A stretch of 64,000 bases of DNA from positions 1,550,001-1,614,000 of the forward strand of contig NC_135771.1 of assembly GCF_052425735.1 (NCBI RefSeq), read 5' to 3'. The DNA is from Oculina patagonica (taxonomy: Eukaryota). Positions 7,385 to 60,597 of this stretch are shown in pieces (within the stretch, counting starts at the first letter, position 1; every line of letters starts with the position of its first letter). The translations under genes were made by a program, and so were the position numbers. The notes under the pieces were generated by a model. The model was not told where the DNA came from, ran no database searches, and was given only the letters and a program-made list of their open reading frames with translations.

Positions 7385-8259
7385 TAATAAATGGAATATT
7401 GACTGGTTTGTCACCTGATAGTTGTTAGTTTAAATATTGTGGGAATGGTATGTCAATTGTAGGTGAATGGAAAACTTTAAATTGTGCATGGAATGGTTAA
7501 TTCTTCTTAATGACCGGCAAACATTTCTTTTAATGCTAGGTCTAAGAATTAATGGTAGTACATCAAGACAGTATTTTCTGGGAGACTATTTTCAATGTAA
7601 TTGCCACTTGCCTACAAATGTAACAAAAAATTGTGTCAATATTAGGAAATACGTAATCAATTGGGTTATAGTAGTAGTTAGCAATCTGTATGAAATTGGT
7701 ATTTTTTAGAGAAATTAAATGCAATTTAATTAATAAATTATGTTACATGTAAATAGTGTGCTCATCTTTCAGTCTTTGAATTAGTGGGAGAGAACAATGA
7801 CAAACACCACCATACAATAACAAATGTGTTAGTTAGTTTTGTACTTTCAAATGCTCAATTAATGAATAAAATAAGAATTATAATAAACGATTTTGTGACT
7901 ATTTTACGAAGTGTTAGTTTTGTGTACGCTGAAACCGGAAGGGGCCCTTACCTTAAGCTTATAAACTGAAAAAAGAAAAACAATCTCCGAAAGAAACCTT
8001 TTATGTAGAATAAAATTTAGACGCAGGTTGCCTTGAGGAATAAACTTAAAAATAGTTTTAAAAATAGCAATTAATAAAACGTCGCCAAACCTATGAAGAA
8101 ACTGTCCGGGAAAAGAAAGAGTTTAAAAATAATGTCGGAACTAAAATTTGGGTCAAAAACGTTTGATGTGATCCCGAAGATTAATCCCGAAGATAAGATA
8201 TCAGACGGGATTGATCCCGAAGAGGAAACATTGGACGATTGATAATGAAGATAAAACTA

Positions 8260-9212
8260 GTAAATAATAAAGATGGTAAATTTTAAGCTCGGTAATAAAT
8301 AATGAAGATGAAGTATTCAACATGACACGAGCATGGGACAAAGAAAAATTCTGAGTCCCCGACGGGAATCGAACCCATGGCCTCCCAGATACCTGTTGGG
8401 CGCTCTAACCAACTGAGCTACGAGAGACTCGTTGTGAGCTGGGCCATTTTTTACTAGGTTAATAAGTGACACGCGTCCTGCATACTGCTAGGATCAGCAA
8501 TGTCGAATTCATCAAGTTTGTAGTAAATAATAAGGATGGTAAATTTTAAGCTCGGTAATAAATAATGAAGATGAAGTATTCAACATGACACGAGCATGAG
8601 ACAAAGAAAAATTCTGAGTCCCCGACGGTAATCGAACCCATGGCCTCCCAGATACTGGTTGGGCGCTCTAACCAATACGAGAGACTCGTTGTGAGCTGGG
8701 CCATTTTACTAGGTTGATAAGTGACACGCGTCCTGCATACTGCTAGGATCAGCAATGTCGAATTCATCAAGTTTGTAGTAAATAATAAAGATGGTAAATT
8801 TTAAGCTCGGTAATAAATAATGAAGATGAAGTATTCAACATGACACGAGCATGGGACAAAGAAAAATTCTGAGTCCCCGACGGGAATCGAACCCATGGCC
8901 TCCCAGATACCTGTTGGGCGCTCTAACCAACTGAGCTACGAGAGACTCGTTGTGAGCTGGGCCATTTGACTAGGTTGATAAGTGACACGCGTCCTGCATA
9001 CTGCTAGGATCAGCAATGTCGAATTCATCAAGTTTGTAGTAAATAATAAAGATGGTAAATTTTAAGCTCGGTAATAAATAATGAAGATGAAGTATTCAGT
9101 ATTCATCAAGTTTCAAGTTTCGAACCCATGGGAGACCATGGGTTCGATTCCCGTCGGGGACTCAGAATTTTTTTTTGTCCCATGCTCGTGTCATGTTGAA
9201 TACTTCATCTTC
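8260..9212 (-). mobile_element. Tandem array of ~260-bp tRNA-containing retroposon units with an inverted end and a 12-bp TSD
   Basis: Units 8261-8523, 8524-8778, 8779-9039 and a partial unit 9040-9097. Inverted fragment at 9130-9212. AAGATAAAACTA occurs at both 8248-8259 and 9213-9224. Confidence 0.85.
8352..8430 (-). ncRNA. tRNA-like cloverleaf within repeat unit 1 (also 8870-8948; D-arm deleted in unit 2); not a canonical tRNA
   Basis: A box TAGCTCAGTTGG and B box GGTTCGATTCC. D, anticodon and T stems can all form, with an extended acceptor GAGTCTCTCG/CGGGGACTC. The anticodon loop lacks U33 and differs between units. A T5 run follows. Confidence 0.7.
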
Positions 9213-10695
9213 AAGATAAAACTACTTCTCGCATGAACACCATCGTTGTCAGTGCGTATCAAGCAAACTAACGTTATAACTGCAGCTTGGTAATCGTTAA
9301 GCTGAACTCAAAATTTTGAATGAAGGTGAGAAGGAGTAGTTGTGTTACACACCTGGGGACTCCAGAGGGGCCAGCCACCACCAAGTTTTTGTGTAATGTC
9401 AGCAAACGACATTAAACAAATAATTCCCTTGTATGTATATTAATAGTTTAAAATGAATTTCAGGTCAAAATGATTTGAACTACAACCCTCGTCGAAAGTG
9501 TTGGCACGATTTCCAAATTCATTCCTTTTCTCCCCCCTCCCCTTCTCAATGTTGAGCTCCCTAACATATGCACAGACAATCCTTAGCCACGAAGGATTCA
9601 ACATTGAAAGGGAAGGGGGACCTCCAAAATGTTTGCACGAGACATCGAGAAACTTTAAGCATAAGGTATTCACATTTTTTTATCTCTTTTGCGTTAATTT
9701 AACAAAGAAAACTAAAAATTAAATTAAAAGAAGTTGAAACGCTTAAAGGTGATGTTTAATACACAAGACGATTTTTAACTCAACATTGCTCGCGCAATCA
9801 GCTTCGCGCAGCTACGTCAGCAAATTGCGCTAAAAGTTGACGGTGAAGGTGTTACACGAACCAACTCCGACAAATTCGGGCAACAACCTTGTCGGTATTT
9901 GAAACGCTTTCAAATCCTGCAACATGTTACCGCAACAAAATGATGCGTTAAAACCCTCTGTCGCGTAACATGGCGCGCCGGACGGTTTTAACGCAACAGT
10001 GCTACAGCAATATGGTAATTAATCCGGAACAAAGAAACTGCAAATCAAACTGGTTTAAAATCATTTTGACCGGAAATTCATTTTATACTACAACATGTGT
10101 CTGAAAATTACCAAATGTGTTAAAAACTTTTTGATCTTCGATAGATCTAGTTAATTGAATGCCTTTTAAACCATTCCTCGGTGTAATTAACAATTCACCG
10201 CATATCAATAGTAAATTCTTGCCGATGAACCACAGAGTAGCTTAGCAATGAGTGCCATCAATAGCTAGCAATCCACTACCGGTCTGTTTGGATACTGGAG
10301 AATCGGTTTATTTTGCACGGAAAGAATCAAACAGTTTATGTTTACTCCACGAAGGATTAATATCGTCAACATTTACCTCTAATTTTTGCTCACTGGTTGA
10401 CAGAAAAGTTCTACAGCTAAAGTACTACATCCAACTTTAAAAAAACCCTGAGGTGAGGGATATTTCAGTTTATTTTTAACTCCAATACATAATATTAAAT
10501 TCTGCTACTTTACCGACCAGTTTGTCAAGAGCTTACCGGCTACCACTCCGAGCTGAGGTTTTGTGAATAGTATCATTTGGTAGAAAAGTAGACCGAAGTA
10601 GTAGAAATAGTGGTTTCCATCGCGAAAGATGCGTTCCTTTTATCCTTCCTTCTTGCTCATATCTATAAAAATCTTTTTCAGTTGCGTAACAAATA

Positions 10696-15729: not shown

Positions 15730-15781
15730 ATCATCATCATCATCATCATCATCATAATAATAATAATAATAATAATAATAA
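15730..15781. repeat. Compound (ATC)n(ATA)n microsatellite at the Penelope insertion site
   Basis: Read directly; its right end overlaps the left TSD copy. Confidence 0.95.
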
Positions 15782-15866
15782 CATTTATGTCCATAATATT
15801 CGCTTTATAAAATATATACTATATACAAGGCTAAAAAGAGTTAAAATGGTAAAATTAATATGATAA

Positions 15867-15903
15867 AACCAAACGTTTTCGGCTGTTTGCCATCATCAGG
15901 GTT
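15867..15903 (-). ncRNA. Minimal type I hammerhead ribozyme (Penelope pLTR), copy 1
   Basis: AACC-CUGAUGA-uGGC aaaca GCC-GAAA-ACGUUU-GGUU: conserved core, 4-bp stem I, 3-bp stem II, palindromic stem III AACGUU. Confidence 0.85.
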
Positions 15904-15935
15904 GAAGAGACCGTCCGCACGCATGCATTTATATC

Positions 15936-18275
15936 TTATGTAATTCCCGTTGGGAAAAGTTTACTGACATAAGAAATGACTTGTTTGTTCAAACTGGGGC
16001 GGAATTGTTGGATCATTAGACCCTCAACGATTCTACGCTTGTGGAATGTCTGTGCTGAAGAGAGAACACGCCAGGTGAAAGAATGCGATGGGTTTTCCCG
16101 CAGGTGTTTTGCAGGTTCAGAGGTGTGAGCAGGATTTGAATGTTCCGCAATTCGCACTTCTAAATTTCGCACAGTCTCGCCAATGTAGTCAACCCCACAA
16201 GAACAATCTCCTTTGTAAACAACTTTGGATCTGTGAGTGTTTTTGTCTTTGTTATTAAAGAGGCTTTTGATGCGCCTTGTTTGCCACAGGATTACAAAGA
16301 TGAAGTTGAAATTAGTAAACTTGTTGAGTTTAGCAATAAACGTTTTACTAAGTTTTTCGTTTTTGCCGCAAAACGGGAGCTTGATGAAAACTTTCTTACG
16401 TTCTTCGAAGAGAAAATCTGGAATGATGTTGTCGTCTTGTGATGAGTCGGTTAGGAAGTTGTTGATTGTATGCGAGATAAAACGTTTCGGATAACCTGCT
16501 TCGATGAAAGAAGTTTCTAAAGTTTTAATGTCCTTCTCAAAATCGGTGGAGATTCGTTTGGCTCTATGGAGTGCGCCAGTGATGCAATTCCTTTTCCACT
16601 TGGTAGGGACCTCAGATTTCCAATGTGTTGGTAATTTCCCCGGTTTCTTAAAGACGCTGCAATTGAACTTGTTGGTGTAACTAAAGGCAGTATCAAGAAA
16701 GTGGTCGGGGTTTTCTTCGACAGTGAAAACAATGTTAGGGTGGTAGCGATTTAGGCGTTCAAGTAGAGCATCAGGCTCGCCCTTTTTCTTCTTAGAGAAA
16801 CAATCATCAACATATCGATCATAGAATGGTGGGTTGAAAGGTCGGACTACATCAGCTTCTAGTTTGGCCATGAAAATGTTAGCAAGGACTGGAGATAGTG
16901 GGTTGCCCATGCCGCATCCATCGATTTGTTTATAAAGCTTGTCGTTAAAACTGAAAACTGTATTCTTGGTGACATTACAGAGAAGACGTCTAAAGAGTAA
17001 CTTTGAGCTGAGTTGTGGTAGCTTGTTGTTGGTGTAGATTTCATTTATGATGTGGTCGATGGTTTCATCGAGCGGAACTTCAGTGAAGAGAGAGGACACA
17101 TCATATGATACCAAGACTTCGTCATCATCAACAGTTCTATTAGTTAGACGCTCAGCGAAATCGGTGGTAGTTTTGATGCTGTATTCATTCTCAGTGAGAG
17201 GGAGTAAGTAAGAGGCTAGGAATTTAGCTGTTTCGTAATAAAATGTTCCACAAGTGCTGACAATCGGTCGAAGTTTCAGATTGTCCTTCGTAATTTGCTC
17301 AGGGTTCTGGAATTTATGGGTTTTGGCAGTCCCATAAAGGAAAGCAGGCTGGTTTGATGTCGGCTTGATCTTATCCAAGGGCAGAGATGACTTGAAGTTT
17401 CGGGTCAGAAAATTTTGAAAAGATTTAAGGTCTTTTAGTGTGTTGTCGTCAGTCTCAACGTATTTACCGTTAGTTATGCCTTCTTGGATCATAGTTTCAA
17501 GTTTGTTGACGTAATCAGCACGTTGCATAATGACGACTGATGAATCTTTATCGCCGGAGAGGACCACTAAGTCGGGATCAGATGTTAGTTTTTGTAAGAC
17601 TTTGAAAGTGTAATCAGGAGTGTTGTGAATGTTTTGATTGAAGAGGTTAGAGTGGACGCGGAGGAAGTGTTTGAAATCTTCATGTTGGCAATCAGGAACG
17701 CTTGAGCTGACTTGGTTCAGAAGAAGTTCAAACTCCGACAGGAGGTTAAGTTTCACGTGCCGGTTCTTGTCGATGAAACTGTGGTTGAGGCCAAAACGTA
17801 AATAATGTAAAGTAGCATCCGCGATGACTTGACTTGAGAGGTTAATAATAGGTACTGAAAAGTCCTTCGGCTGATGTTTACTTCTCAGAAGTTTGGAAAG
17901 CTTTTTGTTCTTAGTGCAAAGAGAATCAAAACGTTCACGACGGAGGGATTTTGATACCATGCGATGTATAAGTTTGAAGGCGCCTGTTCCATGTTTAGAC
18001 ACGAAAGCCGTCCGGAAGGTTAAGAGGTCAGCATTGACACGGCGAAGCTTGAGGCTATGCTCTTGAAGGTTCGCTTTAAGGATGCTCTTTACAGCGGTGT
18101 AACGGTGATCCTCTGATGCGAAATTTCCATTCACTATGGCGAAAGTTGGTGTGCAGCGGTTCCACAGTGCTTTCTGTACAAATCCAATGCTAGCAGCGGT
18201 CCTTTGAAGTTTAGATGTTAGGTACTTCAATGTTTGATATGAAAAAGCGATGCCTTGAGGTAAAGGGATGTCCAT
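15936..18275 (-). CDS. Penelope-like polyprotein: reverse transcriptase + GIY-YIG endonuclease (779 aa)
   Basis: Motifs GDKDSSVVI, LYGTAKTHK, LRPIVS, SYDVSSLFT, QIDGCGMGNPLSP, RYVDD; GIY-YIG VVYKGDC...YIGET...RIAEH. The frame is uninterrupted. Confidence 0.97.
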   Translation of the reverse strand: MDIPLPQGIAFSYQTLKYLTSKLQRTAASIGFVQKALWNRCTPTFAIVNGNFASEDHRYTAVKSILKANLQEHSLKLRRVNADLLTFRTAFVSKHGTGAFKLIHRMVSKSLRRERFDSLCTKNKKLSKLLRSKHQPKDFSVPIINLSSQVIADATLHYLRFGLNHSFIDKNRHVKLNLLSEFELLLNQVSSSVPDCQHEDFKHFLRVHSNLFNQNIHNTPDYTFKVLQKLTSDPDLVVLSGDKDSSVVIMQRADYVNKLETMIQEGITNGKYVETDDNTLKDLKSFQNFLTRNFKSSLPLDKIKPTSNQPAFLYGTAKTHKFQNPEQITKDNLKLRPIVSTCGTFYYETAKFLASYLLPLTENEYSIKTTTDFAERLTNRTVDDDEVLVSYDVSSLFTEVPLDETIDHIINEIYTNNKLPQLSSKLLFRRLLCNVTKNTVFSFNDKLYKQIDGCGMGNPLSPVLANIFMAKLEADVVRPFNPPFYDRYVDDCFSKKKKGEPDALLERLNRYHPNIVFTVEENPDHFLDTAFSYTNKFNCSVFKKPGKLPTHWKSEVPTKWKRNCITGALHRAKRISTDFEKDIKTLETSFIEAGYPKRFISHTINNFLTDSSQDDNIIPDFLFEERKKVFIKLPFCGKNEKLSKTFIAKLNKFTNFNFIFVILWQTRRIKSLFNNKDKNTHRSKVVYKGDCSCGVDYIGETVRNLEVRIAEHSNPAHTSEPAKHLRENPSHSFTWRVLSSAQTFHKRRIVEGLMIQQFRPSLNKQVISYVSKLFPTGIT

Positions 18276-18347
18276 AATATTCGCTTTATAAAATATATAC
18301 TATATACAAGGCTAAAAAGAGTTAAAATGGTAAAATTAATATGATAA

Positions 18348-18384
18348 AACCAAACGTTTTCGGCTGTTTGCCATCATCAGGGTT
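18348..18384 (-). ncRNA. Minimal hammerhead ribozyme, copy 2
   Basis: Identical 37-nt motif, 2481 bp from copy 1. Confidence 0.85.
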
Positions 18385-18561
18385 GAAGAGACCGTCCGCA
18401 CGCATGCATTTATATCTTATGTAATTCCCGTTGGGAAAAGTTTACTGACATAAGAAATGACTTGTTTGTTCAAACTGGGGCGGAATTGTTGGATCATTAG
18501 ACCCTCAACGATTCTACGCTTGTGGAATGTCTTGTGGAATATATTTTATAAAGCGAATATT

Positions 18562-20901
18562 ATGGACATCCCTTTACCTCAAGGCATCGCTTTTTCATAT
18601 CAAACATTGAAGTACCTAACATCTAAACTTCAAAGGACCGCTGCTAGCATTGGATTTGTACAGAAAGCACTGTGGAACCGCTGCACACCAACTTTCGCCA
18701 TAGTGAATGGAAATTTCGCATCAGAGGATCACCGTTACACCGCTGTAAAGAGCATCCTTAAAGCGAACCTTCAAGAGCATAGCCTCAAGCTTCGCCGTGT
18801 CAATGCTGACCTCTTAACCTTCCGGACGGCTTTCGTGTCTAAACATGGAACAGGCGCCTTCAAACTTATACATCGCATGGTATCAAAATCCCTCCGTCGT
18901 GAACGTTTTGATTCTCTTTGCACTAAGAACAAAAAGCTTTCCAAACTTCTGAGAAGTAAACATCAGCCGAAGGACTTTTCAGTACCTATTATTAACCTCT
19001 CAAGTCAAGTCATCGCGGATGCTACTTTACATTATTTACGTTTTGGCCTCAACCACAGTTTCATCGACAAGAACCGGCACGTGAAACTTAACCTCCTGTC
19101 GGAGTTTGAACTTCTTCTGAACCAAGTCAGCTCAAGCGTTCCTGATTGCCAACATGAAGATTTCAAACACTTCCTCCGCGTCCACTCTAACCTCTTCAAT
19201 CAAAACATTCACAACACTCCTGATTACACTTTCAAAGTCTTACAAAAACTAACATCTGATCCCGACTTAGTGGTCCTCTCCGGCGATAAAGATTCATCAG
19301 TCGTCATTATGCAACGTGCTGATTACGTCAACAAACTTGAAACTATGATCCAAGAAGGCATAACTAACGGTAAATACGTTGAGACTGACGACAACACACT
19401 AAAAGACCTTAAATCTTTTCAAAATTTTCTGACCCGAAACTTCAAGTCATCTCTGCCCTTGGATAAGATCAAGCCGACATCAAACCAGCCTGCTTTCCTT
19501 TATGGGACTGCCAAAACCCATAAATTCCAGAACCCTGAGCAAATTACGAAGGACAATCTGAAACTTCGACCGATTGTCAGCACTTGTGGAACATTTTATT
19601 ACGAAACAGCTAAATTCCTAGCCTCTTACTTACTCCCTCTCACTGAGAATGAATACAGCATCAAAACTACCACCGATTTCGCTGAGCGTCTAACTAATAG
19701 AACTGTTGATGATGACGAAGTCTTGGTATCATATGATGTGTCCTCTCTCTTCACTGAAGTTCCGCTCGATGAAACCATCGACCACATCATAAATGAAATC
19801 TACACCAACAACAAGCTACCACAACTCAGCTCAAAGTTACTCTTTAGACGTCTTCTCTGTAATGTCACCAAGAATACAGTTTTCAGTTTTAACGACAAGC
19901 TTTATAAACAAATCGATGGATGCGGCATGGGCAACCCACTATCTCCAGTCCTTGCTAACATTTTCATGGCCAAACTAGAAGCTGATGTAGTCCGACCTTT
20001 CAACCCACCATTCTATGATCGATATGTTGATGATTGTTTCTCTAAGAAGAAAAAGGGCGAGCCTGATGCTCTACTTGAACGCCTAAATCGCTACCACCCT
20101 AACATTGTTTTCACTGTCGAAGAAAACCCCGACCACTTTCTTGATACTGCCTTTAGTTACACCAACAAGTTCAATTGCAGCGTCTTTAAGAAACCGGGGA
20201 AATTACCAACACATTGGAAATCTGAGGTCCCTACCAAGTGGAAAAGGAATTGCATCACTGGCGCACTCCATAGAGCCAAACGAATCTCCACCGATTTTGA
20301 GAAGGACATTAAAACTTTAGAAACTTCTTTCATCGAAGCAGGTTATCCGAAACGTTTTATCTCGCATACAATCAACAACTTCCTAACCGACTCATCACAA
20401 GACGACAACATCATTCCAGATTTTCTCTTCGAAGAACGTAAGAAAGTTTTCATCAAGCTCCCGTTTTGCGGCAAAAACGAAAAACTTAGTAAAACGTTTA
20501 TTGCTAAACTCAACAAGTTTACTAATTTCAACTTCATCTTTGTAATCCTGTGGCAAACAAGGCGCATCAAAAGCCTCTTTAATAACAAAGACAAAAACAC
20601 TCACAGATCCAAAGTTGTTTACAAAGGAGATTGTTCTTGTGGGGTTGACTACATTGGCGAGACTGTGCGAAATTTAGAAGTGCGAATTGCGGAACATTCA
20701 AATCCTGCTCACACCTCTGAACCTGCAAAACACCTGCGGGAAAACCCATCGCATTCTTTCACCTGGCGTGTTCTCTCTTCAGCACAGACATTCCACAAGC
20801 GTAGAATCGTTGAGGGTCTAATGATCCAACAATTCCGCCCCAGTTTGAACAAACAAGTCATTTCTTATGTCAGTAAACTTTTCCCAACGGGAATTACATA
20901 A
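18562..20901 (+). CDS. Penelope-like polyprotein, second identical copy (779 aa from MDIPLPQG)
   Basis: Translation is identical to the minus-strand copy. The extra 35 N-terminal residues in the ORF track (from 18457) come from reading across the inversion junction. Confidence 0.97.
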   Translation: MDIPLPQGIAFSYQTLKYLTSKLQRTAASIGFVQKALWNRCTPTFAIVNGNFASEDHRYTAVKSILKANLQEHSLKLRRVNADLLTFRTAFVSKHGTGAFKLIHRMVSKSLRRERFDSLCTKNKKLSKLLRSKHQPKDFSVPIINLSSQVIADATLHYLRFGLNHSFIDKNRHVKLNLLSEFELLLNQVSSSVPDCQHEDFKHFLRVHSNLFNQNIHNTPDYTFKVLQKLTSDPDLVVLSGDKDSSVVIMQRADYVNKLETMIQEGITNGKYVETDDNTLKDLKSFQNFLTRNFKSSLPLDKIKPTSNQPAFLYGTAKTHKFQNPEQITKDNLKLRPIVSTCGTFYYETAKFLASYLLPLTENEYSIKTTTDFAERLTNRTVDDDEVLVSYDVSSLFTEVPLDETIDHIINEIYTNNKLPQLSSKLLFRRLLCNVTKNTVFSFNDKLYKQIDGCGMGNPLSPVLANIFMAKLEADVVRPFNPPFYDRYVDDCFSKKKKGEPDALLERLNRYHPNIVFTVEENPDHFLDTAFSYTNKFNCSVFKKPGKLPTHWKSEVPTKWKRNCITGALHRAKRISTDFEKDIKTLETSFIEAGYPKRFISHTINNFLTDSSQDDNIIPDFLFEERKKVFIKLPFCGKNEKLSKTFIAKLNKFTNFNFIFVILWQTRRIKSLFNNKDKNTHRSKVVYKGDCSCGVDYIGETVRNLEVRIAEHSNPAHTSEPAKHLRENPSHSFTWRVLSSAQTFHKRRIVEGLMIQQFRPSLNKQVISYVSKLFPTGIT

Positions 20902-20933
20902 GATATAAATGCATGCGTGCGGACGGTCTCTTC

Positions 20934-20970
20934 AACCCTGATGATGGCAAACAGCCGAAAACGTTTGGTT
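20934..20970 (+). ncRNA. Minimal hammerhead ribozyme, copy 3
   Basis: aaccctgatgatggcaaacagccgaaaacgtttggtt, 32 nt after the ORF stop. Confidence 0.85.
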
Positions 20971-21100
20971 TTATCATATTAATTTTACCATTTTAACTCT
21001 TTTTAGCCTTGTATATAGTATATAATAACATTTATAGTGCGCAAGTTTCATAAAGTGTTCAAATGCGCATTACAAGATTAAAAATGGAATAAAAAAAGGT

Positions 21101-23225: not shown

Positions 23226-25361
23226 ATGGCGCCATGTGACAAGAAAGCGCGAAGAAGGCTTCGAAGCATGGACTTGCTCAAACTAGCCTTGATTGTAATC
23301 ACTTTCTCGGGTGTTTATTTATTTATGATGGTACATCGGATAGAAAATCCATTCATGCAGGCGGATCTGTCGCTACCAGTAAACTTTGAACCTGACTTGC
23401 AGTGGAATGACTCGTACATTGAAGGAATGGGCAAAACAGAAGAAATTTCCGATCACTTGGAAAATGACGATACTTTAAATGATCTGTTCAACTTTCACAA
23501 AGATTCTACAAAAGAAAATACATCTTCATCTCAACATTCATTCCAGCGCAAATCCAATTTCAGAAAACGACGAAATTTATCTAAGTCCAGGCGCATCTCC
23601 AAAATGAGGAGTGAATTAAACAGGCGAGAAACTTCGGATTCTCGGAACCTGTCAATTTCCGAGCAAAAACTGGCGCCGACTGCGTCACGACGTTTCTCCG
23701 ACGATCATCGGAAGTCGGTGGAGTCAAAAGTAGCACATCAACAGTCATTCGAGTCTCAGTCGGATCCCGAACGACAGCCTGAAACAACAAATTCTTCCCG
23801 AAGGTTTAACAATGATCACCCGACGAATCTTGGAAAGGAACTTTTTAAGATTGGGTCGAGAGAGAAAGAGCAACAGTCAGAGTCATTACACTTATCCAAC
23901 GATGACATGAAACAGTCGGAACCATTATATTTACCAAATGATGAATTAAAACCCAAGCAAACAAAACGCCAGGAATCAGATTTTCCTGAATCTCATGCTG
24001 AGTCGCACCAACAAAAGAAGCACAAAATTCCGTCTTCAAGCCATGCAAATAACTCCAAATCCAGTAGAAATTTCACGACTTCTGATGGTATCGATGGTGG
24101 TAAATTAGAAGAAAAATTCAACGATCGTTCTCTAGCGGATAATCGAACTGTCTACAGTAAAGATACATCATTTCCAGATGCCAGCATTAAGGGATCTATA
24201 GCTAAACCAAAATTTTCAAATACTCAAGACTTTGCACTGAATCAGTTGCAAAAAGCAAGTTCTAATATTGAACAGCACTCAAGCAAAGCTGCTTTGAATC
24301 CCCAAGGTAACTGGCCTCCAAAAAGCTTGAATAATAAGCAGGATTCCGAGCCGCTTCCGAAGACATCTTCGGGGAAACGAAGAAGCCTCCTTATCTTCGG
24401 CGACGATCGTTCCGGAACAACCTTCGTGACTAAGATGTTTGCTGCCGATCCTCAAATGTTTACAGTATATGAACCACTATGGGTTACAAAAAAGTGGTTC
24501 TCACAACTCAAGTTAATGGATTATCACACAAAAGTCAAATTCACAGTGGATGTGGTAAATGCCTTGTTATCTTGCCAATTCACACGTTCAAAGGCAGGTA
24601 AAACCTTTCTTGGCTACACGTCTGAATCATGGGTTGGTCCTCGCGTATTCGAGAAAAACGTTTTCAGGACTGCTCCGTTTGCAAACAAAACAAAATCAGG
24701 AAGAAGAACTTGGCCTAATCTTTATCGCAAACCGGAATTCGCTGAACAAGTTTGTCTAAACCAATTTAACCACAGTGTAGTCAAAGTAGGACAGATTCGC
24801 GTTCCAGGTGAAAGTCTTTCAGTGTTTATTCCGCGTGTGTTTCGAGAGAACCCAGACACTGATATCCGAGTTCTTCAAATCGTACGCGATCCGAGGGGAA
24901 GTATCAACTCACGAATAAGGGCTGGCTGGATTTCTGATTTCACTTACACGGAATTTCCCAAACTAGCGGAAAAGTTGTGCGCCAAAATCGAATCAAACAT
25001 AGAGTTTGGTAGAAGCTTAAAAAGTGAATGGCTGAAAGAACGATATATGGAGATCAATTACAGAGAGATTACTACAATGCCTATTACTACGGCTAAGAAA
25101 ATATATAAATTTGCTGGCTTTGAAATGACAGACAGTTTGATTGATTGGATTGTCAAGAGCACGAATCCGGAACAGGATCAACTGCAACAAGCCTTAACTA
25201 ATCCATATTCTCACGTCAGAGATTCTAGCAAGAACAACCTAAAGTGGCGTAAAGAATCTCCGATAAAACGCGTGCGAATTATCGAGAAACAATGTAAGAA
25301 CCTGTTAGACTTACTTGGACTCGATGCAGTTGCTGATGAAATGGAAATATTATGTTCTTAG
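23226..25361 (+). CDS. Golgi type II carbohydrate sulfotransferase-like protein (CHST1-7 / Gal-GlcNAc 6-O-sulfotransferase-like), 711 aa
   Basis: Short basic tail, TM helix at about aa 16-35 and a long polar stem. Catalytic motifs: 5'-PSB IFGDDRSGTTF, VYEPLW, 3'-PB IVRDPRGSINSR, INYREI, and WR near the C-terminus. A splice acceptor ttttaccag ends at 23194, just before the ATG. Confidence 0.88.
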   Translation: MAPCDKKARRRLRSMDLLKLALIVITFSGVYLFMMVHRIENPFMQADLSLPVNFEPDLQWNDSYIEGMGKTEEISDHLENDDTLNDLFNFHKDSTKENTSSSQHSFQRKSNFRKRRNLSKSRRISKMRSELNRRETSDSRNLSISEQKLAPTASRRFSDDHRKSVESKVAHQQSFESQSDPERQPETTNSSRRFNNDHPTNLGKELFKIGSREKEQQSESLHLSNDDMKQSEPLYLPNDELKPKQTKRQESDFPESHAESHQQKKHKIPSSSHANNSKSSRNFTTSDGIDGGKLEEKFNDRSLADNRTVYSKDTSFPDASIKGSIAKPKFSNTQDFALNQLQKASSNIEQHSSKAALNPQGNWPPKSLNNKQDSEPLPKTSSGKRRSLLIFGDDRSGTTFVTKMFAADPQMFTVYEPLWVTKKWFSQLKLMDYHTKVKFTVDVVNALLSCQFTRSKAGKTFLGYTSESWVGPRVFEKNVFRTAPFANKTKSGRRTWPNLYRKPEFAEQVCLNQFNHSVVKVGQIRVPGESLSVFIPRVFRENPDTDIRVLQIVRDPRGSINSRIRAGWISDFTYTEFPKLAEKLCAKIESNIEFGRSLKSEWLKERYMEINYREITTMPITTAKKIYKFAGFEMTDSLIDWIVKSTNPEQDQLQQALTNPYSHVRDSSKNNLKWRKESPIKRVRIIEKQCKNLLDLLGLDAVADEMEILCS

Positions 25362-27475: not shown

Positions 27476-30400
27476 ATGGCGGAAAAATTCTATTCCGTAG
27501 TGCTATGTGTTCTAGCTGCTGCTCTTGTTCGTTGGTGTGTGTCCATTAGTTCATATTCAGGTAAGATTGAATTTTTCATGTCCAGGATCGAATTTTCTAG
27601 TCAAAGGCTGATGCCCCGCGCCGGGATGTTTTCAAAATGTACTGCGGTTTTGTTGGATTGCTTATATTTGTTTACAGGGAAGGGAAAGCCACCGATGTTT
27701 GGAGATTATGAAGCGCAGAGGCACTGGATGGAAATAACTTACAATCTACCAGTTGATGAGTGGTAAGATCACCAACTGAGATTAATAGCAATCTTCTATC
27801 AATGTTAAGCGCTGCCGCCGCAGGAGGGGGAGGCCGGGCATATGCCGGGCATTTGAACTAAGCTGAGACTGTCTGTTCAAATGCCCAACCCCAGAGCATT
27901 TGTGGATGTTCAAAAGAGTCACTAAACTTCAATAAAATGTTGTAAGAAAGTCCATTAAAACGGTGAAAAGTCCCCACTAAGGGGCATCCCCTGCCCTATG
28001 CCCGGCCTCCCCCCCAGCGGCTTAACAACGCACCTTGACAAAACCGTTCCAGATGCGGCACTGAACATTAACGGAATGAAGTTTGTAAGACTCGATCGAA
28101 AAAGACGAAAGGGTGGTGGTTGTGTACTTTATTACGCGGAACACTTGAAGGCAATCCACCGAAAGGATTTGTATAATGATGGTCTTGAAGCCATCTGGTT
28201 ACAGGTTAAATTCCCAAGTAACTCTGTATTGTTCTCAGTTATTTATAGGCCACCCGACGCGTGCGATTTTTTCGACCGCATCGGACCTACGCTCGAAAAG
28301 GCTTGGCTAAAATCATCAAACATCATTTTACTGGGAGATTTTAACTGCGACCTTTTAAACAGAGGCAGTCTGGAAATTCCTGCGAACACAAATGCAGAAA
28401 AACTCTGCTCTGTTTTCGACCTGTTTGGGATGCAAAACGTCGTACAAGAGGCGACAAGAACAACTATTACGTCGCGAACTCTAATTGATCTTATTGTCAC
28501 TACAAGAAAAGATCTTATTAGCATTTCAGGCGTCTTTCCATTGGGTATCTCGGATCATGATCTGATATACGCAACTATACGACTAAAGAACAAAAGGCCG
28601 CCACCAAAACATATCAGAACAAGGGATTATAAGAAACTGGACCCAGAGAAATTTAGAGGCGATATTGAGTCTGCACCATTCCATGTTGCATCAAAATTCG
28701 AAGACGCAAATGACATCCTTTGGGCTTGGCAGAAGCTTTTTACTGACATCTGTGACGACCACGCTCCGTGGAAAGAAGTTAAAATAAGAAGTTCATGTGC
28801 ACCATGGATAACAGGTGATATTCGATTTAAAATGAACAGACGATACAAATTATTCAAGAAGGCAACTACGACCAAATGCCCCCTACTTTGGCAAGAGTAC
28901 AAAAAGGTCAGAAACGAAGTTACTTCGGATTTAAGAAAAGCTAAAGCGTCACACTTCTCTAAAATGTTTAAAGAAGTAAAGAACATGACCCAGTATTAAA
29001 TGGAGTCAAGTCGGAACACTCGCAGGTTTCCTTCGGCATTCCCCAGGGTTCGGTGTTGGGACCGACTTTATTCACGCTATTTACAAACGACCTTCCTGCT
29101 TCAGTCAGCTCTGGGTCCTTGTACATGTACGCAGATGACACAACGGCGTACTGCATAGGAGACTCGATAGACATCGCTATTGCGCAGCTAAACAAGGCCC
29201 TGAAGGAAGTATACACGTGGTGTCTAACAAATCGCTTAACACCTCATCCAGGAAAGAGTGAAGTGATGTTACTCAGTAAAGGAACCCTTACAGGGCCACA
29301 TACACCAATACAACTAGGAACCTCAATTCTTAGATGCGTCACAAAAACGCGCCTGCTGGGTATAACTGTCGACCGCAATCTAAGCTGGGTACCTCATGTA
29401 CTAGAGACCAAGAAAAGTTTTGCTAATAAACTGAACTTACTGAAACGATCCAGATTTCTCCCAAAGGGCGTGCTAAAGGATTTTTATTTTAAAGTGATAC
29501 TACCTTCTGTAAAATATGGTTTAGTCTTATGGGGATCGTGTTGTAACTCTGATATGCTAGACTCTATAGAAAGACTACATTGTAGGGCGGCAAGAATAAT
29601 TTTCAACTTGCCCAAGGACATGCCGTCAAATGATGTGCTCAAATATGATCAGTGGTCTACCTTTTCCCTGTATTATAAGCTCGATATCCTTAGGCTATTT
29701 TATAAGGCAAACAACGGCAGCCTGCCCGAGCCCCTGACGAAATCGATACTAGACAACTCCAGTCATGGCTATTCGCTCCGAGGAAAACAACTATCTTCGA
29801 TACCAAGATTCAACTCGCGATTCATAAAGGATTCACTCAGATACAAGGGATCTGTTCTTTGGAACATTGTTAAATACCACAATCAACAGAAGAGTTTTTC
29901 AAGTTTTTTAGAGCTAAGAAAGCATGTTGTAAATAGAGCATATTTTAAAGATTTTAATTTTAACGCGCTGTCGGCTTCAACAACCCGCCACAGACACAGT
30001 GATTTTATATATAATTAGTTTTTAGTTAGTTAATTGTAATCATTTAGTATACATAGCAACAGTCTAGTTAGTATTTAATTAAATAATTAATTTTACTGTA
30101 AATATAAGAATTGTAATTTTAATCTTAGCATAGTTAATTTAAATACACGACCCCACAAGCTTTTAGCTTTTACTATTATCGTGTCAAAATAAAGTTTTAC
30201 CTTACCTTACCTTACCTAACATTGATAGGTGCATTAGTTAAATTAAGGCAGTCTAACAAAAGACAGTCTAAGTTAAATTAAGACAGTGATTATTAAAGTA
30301 AAAAGGTTGTTGACTGAAGGTTAAATTATCCCAAGGCAAATAAATAAATTATGTGTATAAGGGGTATTTAAGATGTTGATCCCAAGGTGCATTACAAGCA

Positions 30401-59238: not shown

Positions 59239-60597
59239 TTAGAATTGTTTTAGAGGAGAGAATAAAAGATACCTGATCAAGTGAGCTGGAAGTGGTAACT
59301 GGGGAATCTCCCGGGCAGGAACATGATTAATTACAACCAATCTACACATGTGCTGAAGATTTAAAATTAAAGGGAGCTGCCAAACCCTGATTCGTCCATC
59401 TTTGTAACCGGCAGCAATCTGTTGGCACGTTCGTGTAAACGCCAGGCAAGAAACTTCTGTGTTCTGGTACCAAGTTCTTAAACCATCTGGTTGTTGGTGC
59501 GCATTGAGGACAAATAATACATGTAAGCTCTCTGAATTCAAAGCTAAGACTTTGGAATCCGAGGTACCTACTGCAAGCATTGTGCCATCAGGGGAAAAGG
59601 CGGCAGATCTTATCTTCTGCCATGGAGTCTGCAGCGCATAAGCAAACTGAATGCAAGTCAAGCCAGGTTCATCCGCAGCAAGAGACCACGTCTGTATCGT
59701 GCCATCCTCAAGACATGACGTCAAGTACTTATGACCATAGCGAGGATCAAATAAATACCAACATTGTAAGTGAGAACTAAGTGATCGGCGACTTGTGTGA
59801 CGGAATGGAAGGCACAAACACGTGGACGACGTCGAAGAATCTAAGTCGAGACTACTATGGATGTGAAAATTCTGAGTGTCGAAAACAATTAGCTGTCCAG
59901 AAGTACATGACACGGCTAAGAACAAACCATCAGGGGAAAACACACACGATCTCGCGTGCCCACGAATCTTTGAGCTTGAATTCGTTGCCGATTTCATTTT
60001 TCTCACCATCTTCTTGGTAGCAATGTCAATAATACAGATATGATTTAAATCTCCTGTTAATTTAGATGCCACGACAAGCGAGCGACCATCCGGAGAGAAC
60101 GAACAGCACATTAAAACTCCTCGTCTCTTTCGCCAAAATCTTCGCATGTGAACAACTTCAGCGCTGGTAGTTTTCCACGATCGCATTCGTACCAAAGCGA
60201 GAGAATCCTCGCTAAAAATGCAAACGACCATTTGCCCATCAGGTGAAAAATCACACGATCTAAAAGAGCGCGGAAAATCAGCCAAAAATCCAGTGTTGAT
60301 TTGCCTTCGATTCAGGTCCCATAATCTTATCGACGAAAATTCGCGATTATGGCGTAAGAAAGTCGTTTGTTCTACTTTGGATGCCGTTAAAAGTACGCTA
60401 TCGTCGTCGCTTGGAAAGAAACACGAATAAATGTCCTTGTCTTCGTGTTTTAGTTGAATAACAACGTCGAATAGGTGTTCATGACGATTTTCTGACGGCA
60501 ATGAACGATGTGATCTGCCCGACAAGCGAGGCACAGCTGCACGGTTCGAGAGGGAAAATTCTTCCGCGTGCCGTAAATTTGAAGCATTTGTTCCCAT
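59239..60597 (-). CDS. WD40-repeat and SOCS-box protein (WSB-like), intronless CDS, 452 aa
   Basis: Several CxFSPDG repeats and WD-type blade ends (IRLWD, IQTWS, IRVWQ); C-terminal SOCS box LQHMCRLVV...LPLPAHLIRYL. Confidence 0.9.
   Translation of the reverse strand: MGTNASNLRHAEEFSLSNRAAVPRLSGRSHRSLPSENRHEHLFDVVIQLKHEDKDIYSCFFPSDDDSVLLTASKVEQTTFLRHNREFSSIRLWDLNRRQINTGFLADFPRSFRSCDFSPDGQMVVCIFSEDSLALVRMRSWKTTSAEVVHMRRFWRKRRGVLMCCSFSPDGRSLVVASKLTGDLNHICIIDIATKKMVRKMKSATNSSSKIRGHARSCVFSPDGLFLAVSCTSGQLIVFDTQNFHIHSSLDLDSSTSSTCLCLPFRHTSRRSLSSHLQCWYLFDPRYGHKYLTSCLEDGTIQTWSLAADEPGLTCIQFAYALQTPWQKIRSAAFSPDGTMLAVGTSDSKVLALNSESLHVLFVLNAHQQPDGLRTWYQNTEVSCLAFTRTCQQIAAGYKDGRIRVWQLPLILNLQHMCRLVVINHVPAREIPQLPLPAHLIRYLLFSPLKQF

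Follow-up and report, generated by a model that had tools for sequence, protein, structure and literature searches.

The insert at positions 8248-9224 of the 64,000-nt stretch of Oculina patagonica DNA analysed here (the window, to whose whole length all positions refer) belongs to a family of high-copy, non-coding, non-autonomous retroelements with a 261-nt unit, which carries a tRNA-derived module and a conserved hairpin and has neither ribozyme nor tail. This tRNA-bearing family is abundant and young. The architecture of its insertions, which is the whole basis of the assignment, argues that it is probably a non-autonomous passenger of a reverse transcriptase (RT) of the type encoded by Penelope-like elements (PLEs). 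Penelope-like retrotransposons can, apparently, copy a tRNA-derived passenger. A PLE enzyme is regarded as the most likely copier because the insertion signature of the family is the one published for PLEs and because PLEs appear to be intact and recently active in this genome.

Architecture of the insertion

The strand that carries the tRNA, here the minus strand of the window, was defined as the sense strand of the element. Unit 3 was taken as the reference, and numbers preceded by the word unit count along its 261 nt in the sense direction (Table 1). Tandem Repeats Finder reports an array at 8258-9098 with a period of 255, 3.2 copies, 95% matches and a score of 1573, and the start-to-start spacings of its units are 263, 255 and 261. 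Read 5′ to 3′ in the sense direction, the insert consists of a target duplication, an inverted arm (running from unit 215 to 131), a filler, a partial unit (unit 199-261), three more units of which the last ends at unit 260, and the second copy of the target duplication. The inverted arm is 85 nt long and 98% complementary to 8303-8387. Short re-copied pieces of the unit make up the junction between the two arms, with 9101-9113 matching unit 1-13, and 9120-9131 matching unit 138-149, in reverse complement, and both AGTATTC and CAAGTTT occur twice there. The filler is read as a template-switch scar.

Much of this had been described in an earlier note on the same DNA, which was made from the sequence letters and their open reading frames (ORFs). 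Its 3.2 head-to-tail units of 255-263 bp, its junction of re-copied pieces and its single 12-bp duplication (AAGATAAAACTA) surrounding the whole insert were all recovered here. So were the tRNA-like module in the middle of the unit, the lack of a poly(A) or simple-repeat tail and the lack of a hammerhead, for which the genome-wide and structural data are given below. The inverted fragment that it listed at 83 bp is indeed present, with the length corrected to 85 nt.

Table 1. Features of the insert and its units, with the Penelope-like element of the window listed for context.
Feature	Position	Strand	Basis
Left target-site duplication, 12 bp, AAGATAAAACTA	8248..8259	.	
Unit 1, 3′-most in the element sense; ends at unit 260, the A terminus (...TTATTTACTA), adjoining the duplication; 98.5% identical to unit 3	8258..8519	-	
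Unit 2, 255 nt; 6-8 nt deletion within the tRNA-like module and four more private substitutions	8520..8774	-	
Unit 3, 261 nt, reference; rare variant 124A common to units 1 and 3	8775..9035	-	
Fourth unit, 5′-truncated (unit 199-261), 100% identity; 5′ end of the direct arm	9036..9098	-	
Junction filler of short re-copied unit pieces (unit 13 to 1, repeated CAAGTTT, unit 149 to 138)	9099..9128	.	
Inverted 5′ arm (unit 131-215), ending outward at the B terminus, which falls 43 nt short of A	9129..9213	+	
Right target-site duplication, 12 bp, AAGATAAAACTA	9213..9224	.	
tRNA-like cloverleaf of unit 1 (unit 90-165)	8353..8428	-	ARAGORN, Rfam
tRNA-like cloverleaf of unit 3	8871..8946	-	ARAGORN, Rfam
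Hairpin module (unit 16-52), in every unit	8468..8504	-	Minimum free energy structure
Penelope-like element, two 100% identical inverted copies, context only	15775..21035	.	

The target duplication and an empty site in a related coral show that 8248-9224 is an insertion. In a contig from that coral, with flanks that are ~90% identical, the counterparts of 8117-8229 and 9257-9368 are joined by 49 nt, at the place where the window has 1,027 nt. Both flanks of the insert are single copy in the present genome, so the contig represents the orthologous empty site and not a paralogue.

Abundance and sampling of the family

Searches of the 529-Mb genome of this stony coral with up to two mismatches gave 2,847 matches to the 3′-terminal 23-mer of the unit, 1,151 matches to the 23-mer which spans the junction from unit 261 to unit 1 (261|1) and 3,677 matches to a 23-mer from the T arm; the reversed control gave 0 in each case. 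The first 100 exact matches to the 3′ motif on one chromosome fall into 74 loci, which scales to roughly 2,000 loci in the genome, and at least 40% of unit ends run directly into another unit. Two samples of loci were then available for closer study, one of the 30 loci that best match the full unit and one of 40 loci chosen by the exact 3′ 23-mer only. Together these represent ~60 independent insertions.

Two sets of loci within these samples turned out to be paralogous copies of single insertions. A supposed canonical form of the family, consisting of 79 nt plus one unit, was rejected, as one insertion, lying within a larger repeat, accounted for all six loci concerned (L006, L007, L009, L012, L022 and L028). 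That insertion comprises unit 175-261 followed by a full unit, with a 12-bp duplication (ATTTTAAACACT), and at a distance of 400-800 bp the same six loci have older relatives of the unit with 72% and 81% identity. Likewise, L056, L059, L060 and L061, which lie at 17-19 Mb on one chromosome, share more than 1.6 kb on each side at ~90% identity and were counted as one event. No ORF of at least 90 aa with an obvious function was found in the larger repeats around these paralogous insertions.

Content of the unit

The tRNA-like module occupies the middle of the unit. ARAGORN calls it as a 76-nt Thr-GGT cloverleaf, and Rfam assigns it to the tRNA family with 37.8 bits against a gathering score of 29. 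In the window neither program finds a cloverleaf in unit 2, the deletion of which falls inside the module, and ARAGORN detects the cloverleaf in most units of ~55 loci. The acceptor stem is extended to unit 88-167 by the pairing of GAGUC with GACUC, giving nine pairs and one bulge. The A box (TAGCTCAGTTGG) and the B box (GGTTCGATTCC) are intact, and the anticodon loop is without U33.

A conserved TTTTT (unit 174-178) lies 9 nt past the cloverleaf. RNA polymerase III (Pol III) terminates at T runs, and it would be expected to stop at this one, giving only a product of ~90 nt. The position of the run just after the cloverleaf therefore argues against Pol III reading through the whole unit, and the proposal in the earlier note that the cloverleaf supplies a Pol III promoter for it is not borne out. 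Most likely the cloverleaf does not act as a promoter for the unit as a whole but as a folded RNA element, which may contribute to stability, to recognition or to RNase Z processing of the 3′ end.

The second structured part is the hairpin at unit 16-52, which is the least variable part of the unit in a comparison of 55 full units, with a minor-allele fraction of 0.011 for unit 21-40. Its 3′ base, unit 53, is a recurrent point of 5′ truncation. The predicted fold of the unit as a whole is not unusually stable (z -1.16) and is not rod-like. Towards its 3′ end the unit has two similar 19-nt motifs, at unit 209-227 and 243-261 (CATCTTCATTATTTATTAC and CATCTTTATTATTTACTAC), which are 34 nt apart and are seen in the window at, for example, 8293-8311 and 8259-8277 on the minus strand. 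The B terminus falls within the first of these motifs, and the second runs up to the A terminus.

No ribozyme family was identified in the unit by Rfam at E-values up to 10, with tRNA being the only match. The hammerhead core (CUGANGA...GAAA) is absent from both strands of the unit, and GAAA does not occur anywhere on the sense strand. As a positive control, the same core-pattern search finds the minimal hammerhead in the PLE of the window, which Rfam does not detect.

Termini, truncation and inverted insertions

Some 80 3′ ends of the family could be placed, and they form two tight classes, namely A at unit 257-261 (~50 ends, mostly at 260) and B at unit 213-226 (~28 ends, mostly at 215-222). 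The flanks beyond the A and B termini are unrelated to one another, and no A-run or simple-repeat tail was found at any of these ~80 ends. The 5′ ends behave differently from the 3′ ends, in that 85 arm 5′ ends are scattered over the unit and do not cluster at the tRNA head (unit 88). In the sample chosen by the 3′ 23-mer the 261|1 junction is crossed in 29 of the 40 loci. The longest arrays have 4-5.5 units, and it is whole arrays that the target duplications flank. As a truncated copy shorter than a unit cannot by later duplication yield full units with an exact junction, the template would already have had its units head to tail. The possibility that most copies are tailed monomers starting at the tRNA head, which the earlier note had held against its own proposal, thus fails in the census of ~60 loci, where there are no tails, starts are scattered and junctions are crossed.

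Inverted insertions follow a strict rule. All 21 that were examined run minus then plus, with both 3′ ends facing outward, 15 of them lying among the 40 sampled loci. The same orientation holds for the opposite-strand pairs in two coordinate lists (9/9 and 10/10), which in part concern the same loci as the 21. The pairing of the ends is also uneven, with A/B in 16, A/other in three, B/other in one, B/B in one and A/A in none of the 21. Single-arm insertions have A ends more often than B ends; as single arms and ascertainment both favour A, the lack of A/A pairs is not an effect of sampling. At the joints the arms usually abut with 1-2 nt of overlap, and some have a patchwork filler like that of the window. 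Target duplications are 9-15 bp, mostly 12-14 bp, at more than 20 independent loci.

Although scattered overall, the 5′ ends are depleted within the cloverleaf (14 seen versus ~26 expected), and they recur at unit 53 (four independent loci) and at unit 168, the 3′ base of the extended acceptor stem (three independent loci). At two of the independent ends at 168 a C/G-rich filler precedes the element, such as 12 C in a row (L047:2094-2118 and L059:1906-1930, the latter also in L060). This filler looks like untemplated addition once the RT had reached the 5′ end of the RNA. The pattern, which was noticed post hoc, is suggestive of an RT travelling 3′ to 5′ on a folded sense RNA, perhaps one with ends made by RNase Z.

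Penelope-like elements and the proposed mechanism

PLE insertions are described as having strong 5′ truncation, partial tandems (pseudo-LTRs, after long terminal repeats), an inverted 5′-truncated copy adjoining the 5′ end and a 30-40-bp extension that is often one-sided (Craig et al., 2021, PMC8557442), and the same picture is given by Goubert et al. (2022, PMC8969392). The inverted copy and the one-sided extension are not seen with insertion of the type used by long interspersed nuclear elements (LINEs) (PMC8557442). The tRNA-bearing family has each of these features, as it combines a fixed 3′ end and 5′ truncation with head-to-tail units inside one duplication, an inverted 5′ arm and a one-sided extension. 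The last of these is the offset of 43 nt between A and B, which, with each terminus used once per inverted insertion, matches the published one-sided PLE tail.

The window itself contains such an element 7 kb from the insert, and the earlier note had remarked on the architecture common to both. This is confirmed by its 14-bp duplication (ATAATAACATTTAT), its 2,486-nt arms, which are 100% complementary with the 3′ ends outward, and its stuttered joint with a repeated CTTGTGGAAT. A partial tandem of 239 nt is present too, and only one end of the element is extended, by 26 nt. Each copy has an intact ORF (779 and 814 aa) for an RT with a C-terminal GIY-YIG nuclease, and the minimal hammerhead core with palindromic stem III (CTGATGA..GAAA), which lies in the 3′ region of the element, is present three times (20938, plus; 18380, minus; 15899, minus). 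Genome-wide there are 2,692 first-look PLE candidates, several of which are 99-100% identical with open frames, and all ten inverted PLE pairs (10/10) run minus then plus. Judging by these sequences, PLEs are intact and recently active in this genome and have the same layout as the tRNA-bearing family. The PLE of the window is best regarded as a possible type of helper for the unit. Named in the earlier note as an example of such a helper, it agrees with the insert in architecture but shares no sequence with the unit.

The mechanism proposed for the family is as follows. A sense RNA with its units already head to tail would be reverse-transcribed at staggered nicks in the target. Synthesis of cDNA would begin inside the unit at either of two positions (unit ~260 or ~218), separated by 43 nt, with a microhomology of 1-3 nt. 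Priming at both nicks, in roughly a third of the events, would produce two arms with their 3′ ends outward, one from each site, and these arms would be joined in the middle of the insert by an overlap of 1-2 nt or by patchwork filler.

Form of the template and changes after insertion

Several observations weigh against a PLE-type origin or against a simple version of it. Canonical PLEs and animal retrozymes carry a hammerhead in their repeated part and this unit has none. A comparison of the unit with all other parts of the window, among them the LINE and the two PLE copies, found no similarity (word size 7, E-value up to 10). Both locus samples are ascertained, with short copies and copies with two B ends under-counted. 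Units within one array differ, as with 124A (~3% of family depth), which is present in units 1 and 3 of the window and not in unit 2, and other arrays show similar a-b-a patterns. Finally, the four paralogous copies of one insertion (L056 and L059-L061) carry from 1.2 to 2.2 units.

For the missing hammerhead there is a tentative and rather doubtful explanation, namely that PLE-type reverse transcription needs no hammerhead and that the tRNA-like fold has replaced the ribozyme, with host tRNA-processing enzymes defining the template through an RNase Z cut at unit 168. The a-b-a patterns argue against a single circle as template, and so does the unit identity within loci (94.8%), which only slightly exceeds that between loci (92.2%). 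A test of array homogeneity, based on what rolling-circle copying would be expected to give, was mixed and does not separate the template models. The seven 5′ ends at unit 1-7 hint at linear monomers. The template may have been a multimeric transcript, a circle or a set of linear monomers joined by end-to-end jumps. Since the number of units differs among paralogues, either some growth of arrays took place after insertion or the template was mixed. Local growth at the DNA level, the other possibility that the earlier note had held against itself, is thus partly borne out by the paralogous copies (1.2 versus 2.2 units), but the exact 261|1 crossings in 29 of 40 loci point to a template that was joined beforehand.

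Alternative explanations

The alternative closest to the PLE-passenger explanation, which it refines and does not exclude, is a ribozyme-free analogue of the retrozymes. In this scheme Pol III transcription depends on the cloverleaf, whose RNase P and RNase Z sites allow the multimer to be cut to monomers of ~260 nt; these are then circularised and copied by a PLE RT in rolling-circle fashion. Most loci do cross the unit junction, and most units retain the cloverleaf, with both the A box and the B box intact. Unit 168 is the exact position of three independent 5′ ends, two of them with C-rich filler as if the RT had run off the end of an RNA, and hammerhead retrozymes of 220-245 nt are reported to form circles in a stony coral (PMC7229834). 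However, the conserved TTTTT should stop Pol III 9 nt past the cloverleaf, and the ends expected from RNase P and RNase Z are at ~88 and 168 and not at the unit boundary. No cluster of 5′ ends is found at 88, and the actual termini of the element (unit 257-261 and 213-226) differ from the ends of the cloverleaf (88 and 167). The suggestion of the earlier note that RNase P/Z sites stand in for a ribozyme is for this reason not sustained, the three 5′ ends at 168 being the sole hint in its favour. RNase P and RNase Z products carry a 5′-phosphate and a 3′-OH, and the RtcB-type ligase implicated for retrozymes does not act on such ends. The predicted fold, in addition, is not rod-like, the unit differences within arrays are ones that a single circle cannot give, and the 5′ ends at unit 1-7 again point towards linear monomers. 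This scheme is accordingly considered unlikely as a whole, and the tests that could be made lend no support to a circular RNA stage, to transcription driven by Pol III or to processing by RNase P/Z.

Both remaining alternatives dispense with a PLE enzyme. An ordinary tRNA-derived short interspersed nuclear element (SINE) could have been moved by a LINE, with inversions arising from twin priming and arrays from later tandem duplication. Duplications of 9-15 bp and 5′ truncation would also fit target-primed reverse transcription of the LINE type, LINEs are present (for example the endonuclease and RT ORFs at 27998-30018), and the number of units can change after insertion. Nevertheless, this is highly improbable given that the ~80 ends have no tail and that the tRNA module is internal with no clustering of 5′ ends at its head. 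Later duplication of a copy shorter than a unit cannot make the exact 261|1 junction that most sampled loci cross, and inverted arms have their outward ends at two set sites instead of at variable internal positions, with A/B pairing and A/A in 0 of 21. The unit, moreover, has no similarity to the LINE of the window. Less probable still, to the point of being barely credible, is a repeat spread at the DNA level, either as a miniature inverted-repeat transposable element (MITE) or other DNA transposon, the terminal inverted repeats of which would be imperfect and 19 bp long (GTAGTAAATAATAAAGATG / GTAATAAATAATGAAGATG), or as a dispersed satellite carried by a rolling-circle transposon. The two 19-nt motifs do face outward in inverted insertions as terminal inverted repeats would. 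Yet the B ends, at 213-226 and mostly at 215-222, fall inside the first motif and not at its end, the majority of copies consist of one arm that begins at an arbitrary point of the unit, and no long arrays were seen, the maximum being ~5.5 units. Cut-and-paste transposons make target duplications of fixed length and Helitrons make none, whereas the length in this family varies from 9 to 15 bp.

Other features of the window and of the sampled loci

Two adjacent ORFs at 27998-30018 (plus strand), one with an AP-type endonuclease domain (Exo_endo_phos) and one with an RT domain, represent a LINE fragment which is unrelated in sequence to the tRNA-bearing unit. Next to the insert, another repeat is located at 9402-9674, with contig depth in the thousands in four runs. 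A long hairpin at 9526-9629 gives weak, sub-threshold matches to models of microRNA precursors, and the repeat may be a small fold-back element. The window also has an intron-less ORF of 452 aa with WD40 repeats and a SOCS box (59239-60597, minus) and a 711-aa ORF with a sulfotransferase domain (23226-25361, plus). Among the sampled loci, canonical-looking hammerhead cores (CTGATGAGTGTGGA...TCCATACGAAAC) were identified at L036:466 and L055:352 (plus), in a repeat common to the flanks of these two unrelated loci, which is probably an ordinary coral retrozyme family.

Significance

PLEs are, to our knowledge, the least understood class of retrotransposons, and their only recognised passengers in animals are hammerhead retrozymes, so that the ribozyme has been assumed to be central. 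The tRNA-bearing family suggests that the Penelope insertion signature is independent of the hammerhead; the signature of tandem units, inverted arms and tail would then stem from the enzyme. If the tRNA-like fold has indeed taken the place of the ribozyme, the family would be the first tRNA-derived SINE of Penelope-like elements. As a passenger of PLEs, it would extend the SINE concept, that of a passenger derived from a small RNA, to a third class of retroelement. The rule of one long and one short end would, if true, mean that two nicks prime at fixed sites 43 nt apart on one RNA-protein complex. The way in which tandem and inverted PLE insertions arise is a question still open in the literature (PMC8557442). 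The roughly 2,000 insertions of this family, being short and easily aligned, could be used to study the rules of priming, including the two start sites, the pairing of A with B ends, the joints at microhomologies and the halts at RNA structures.

Comparison with known systems

No description of a tRNA-derived passenger of PLEs was found in open-access papers and preprints, with Repbase and Dfam lying outside the scope of that search. The nearest relatives in form are the metazoan non-LTR retrozymes (Cervera and de la Pena, 2020, PMC7229834; Li, Clavereau and Pollet, 2026, bioRxiv 10.64898/2026.07.22.740005). These hammerhead-bearing elements are present in stony corals and have recently been argued to be PLE derivatives. 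Like the tRNA-bearing family, retrozymes have small (150-450 bp), non-coding, AT-rich units in dispersed short tandem arrays with target duplications of more than 4 bp, and both are regarded as probable passengers of PLEs. They differ in having a type I hammerhead in each unit, by which multimers are cut to monomers before circularisation, whereas the present unit has a tRNA-like module and no hammerhead. Retrozymes are also characterised by monomeric linear and circular RNA in vivo and by a stable self-paired fold, rod-like in the case of the coral RNAs (PMC7229834), in contrast to the ordinary predicted fold of this unit (z -1.16).

Ribozyme-free non-autonomous PLEs are known, namely MRC1 and other non-autonomous elements (Chlamys elements, Chlamydomonas; PMC8557442), but these belong to green algae and no module derived from a small RNA is reported for them. 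Published non-autonomous PLE derivatives usually share their 3′ end with the helper (PMC8557442), a similarity not found for this unit, which was compared with the PLE of the window only.

With the tRNA-derived SINEs, the family has in common a tRNA module with intact A and B boxes, its non-autonomous nature, high copy number and target duplications. It differs from them in that the module is internal (unit 88-167) and followed by a T5 run, that there is no LINE-derived or A-rich tail, and that the insertions are multimeric, have inverted arms and can end at either of two termini. Cassandra, Helenus and Ajax (Kojima, 2024, PMC10886601) provide a precedent, as they have a tRNA or 5S module in the repeated part of a non-autonomous passenger that belongs to a retroelement class other than LINEs. 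These are LTR elements with a primer-binding site and a polypurine tract, whereas the tRNA-bearing family has neither and is characterised by target-primed, 5′-truncated insertions.

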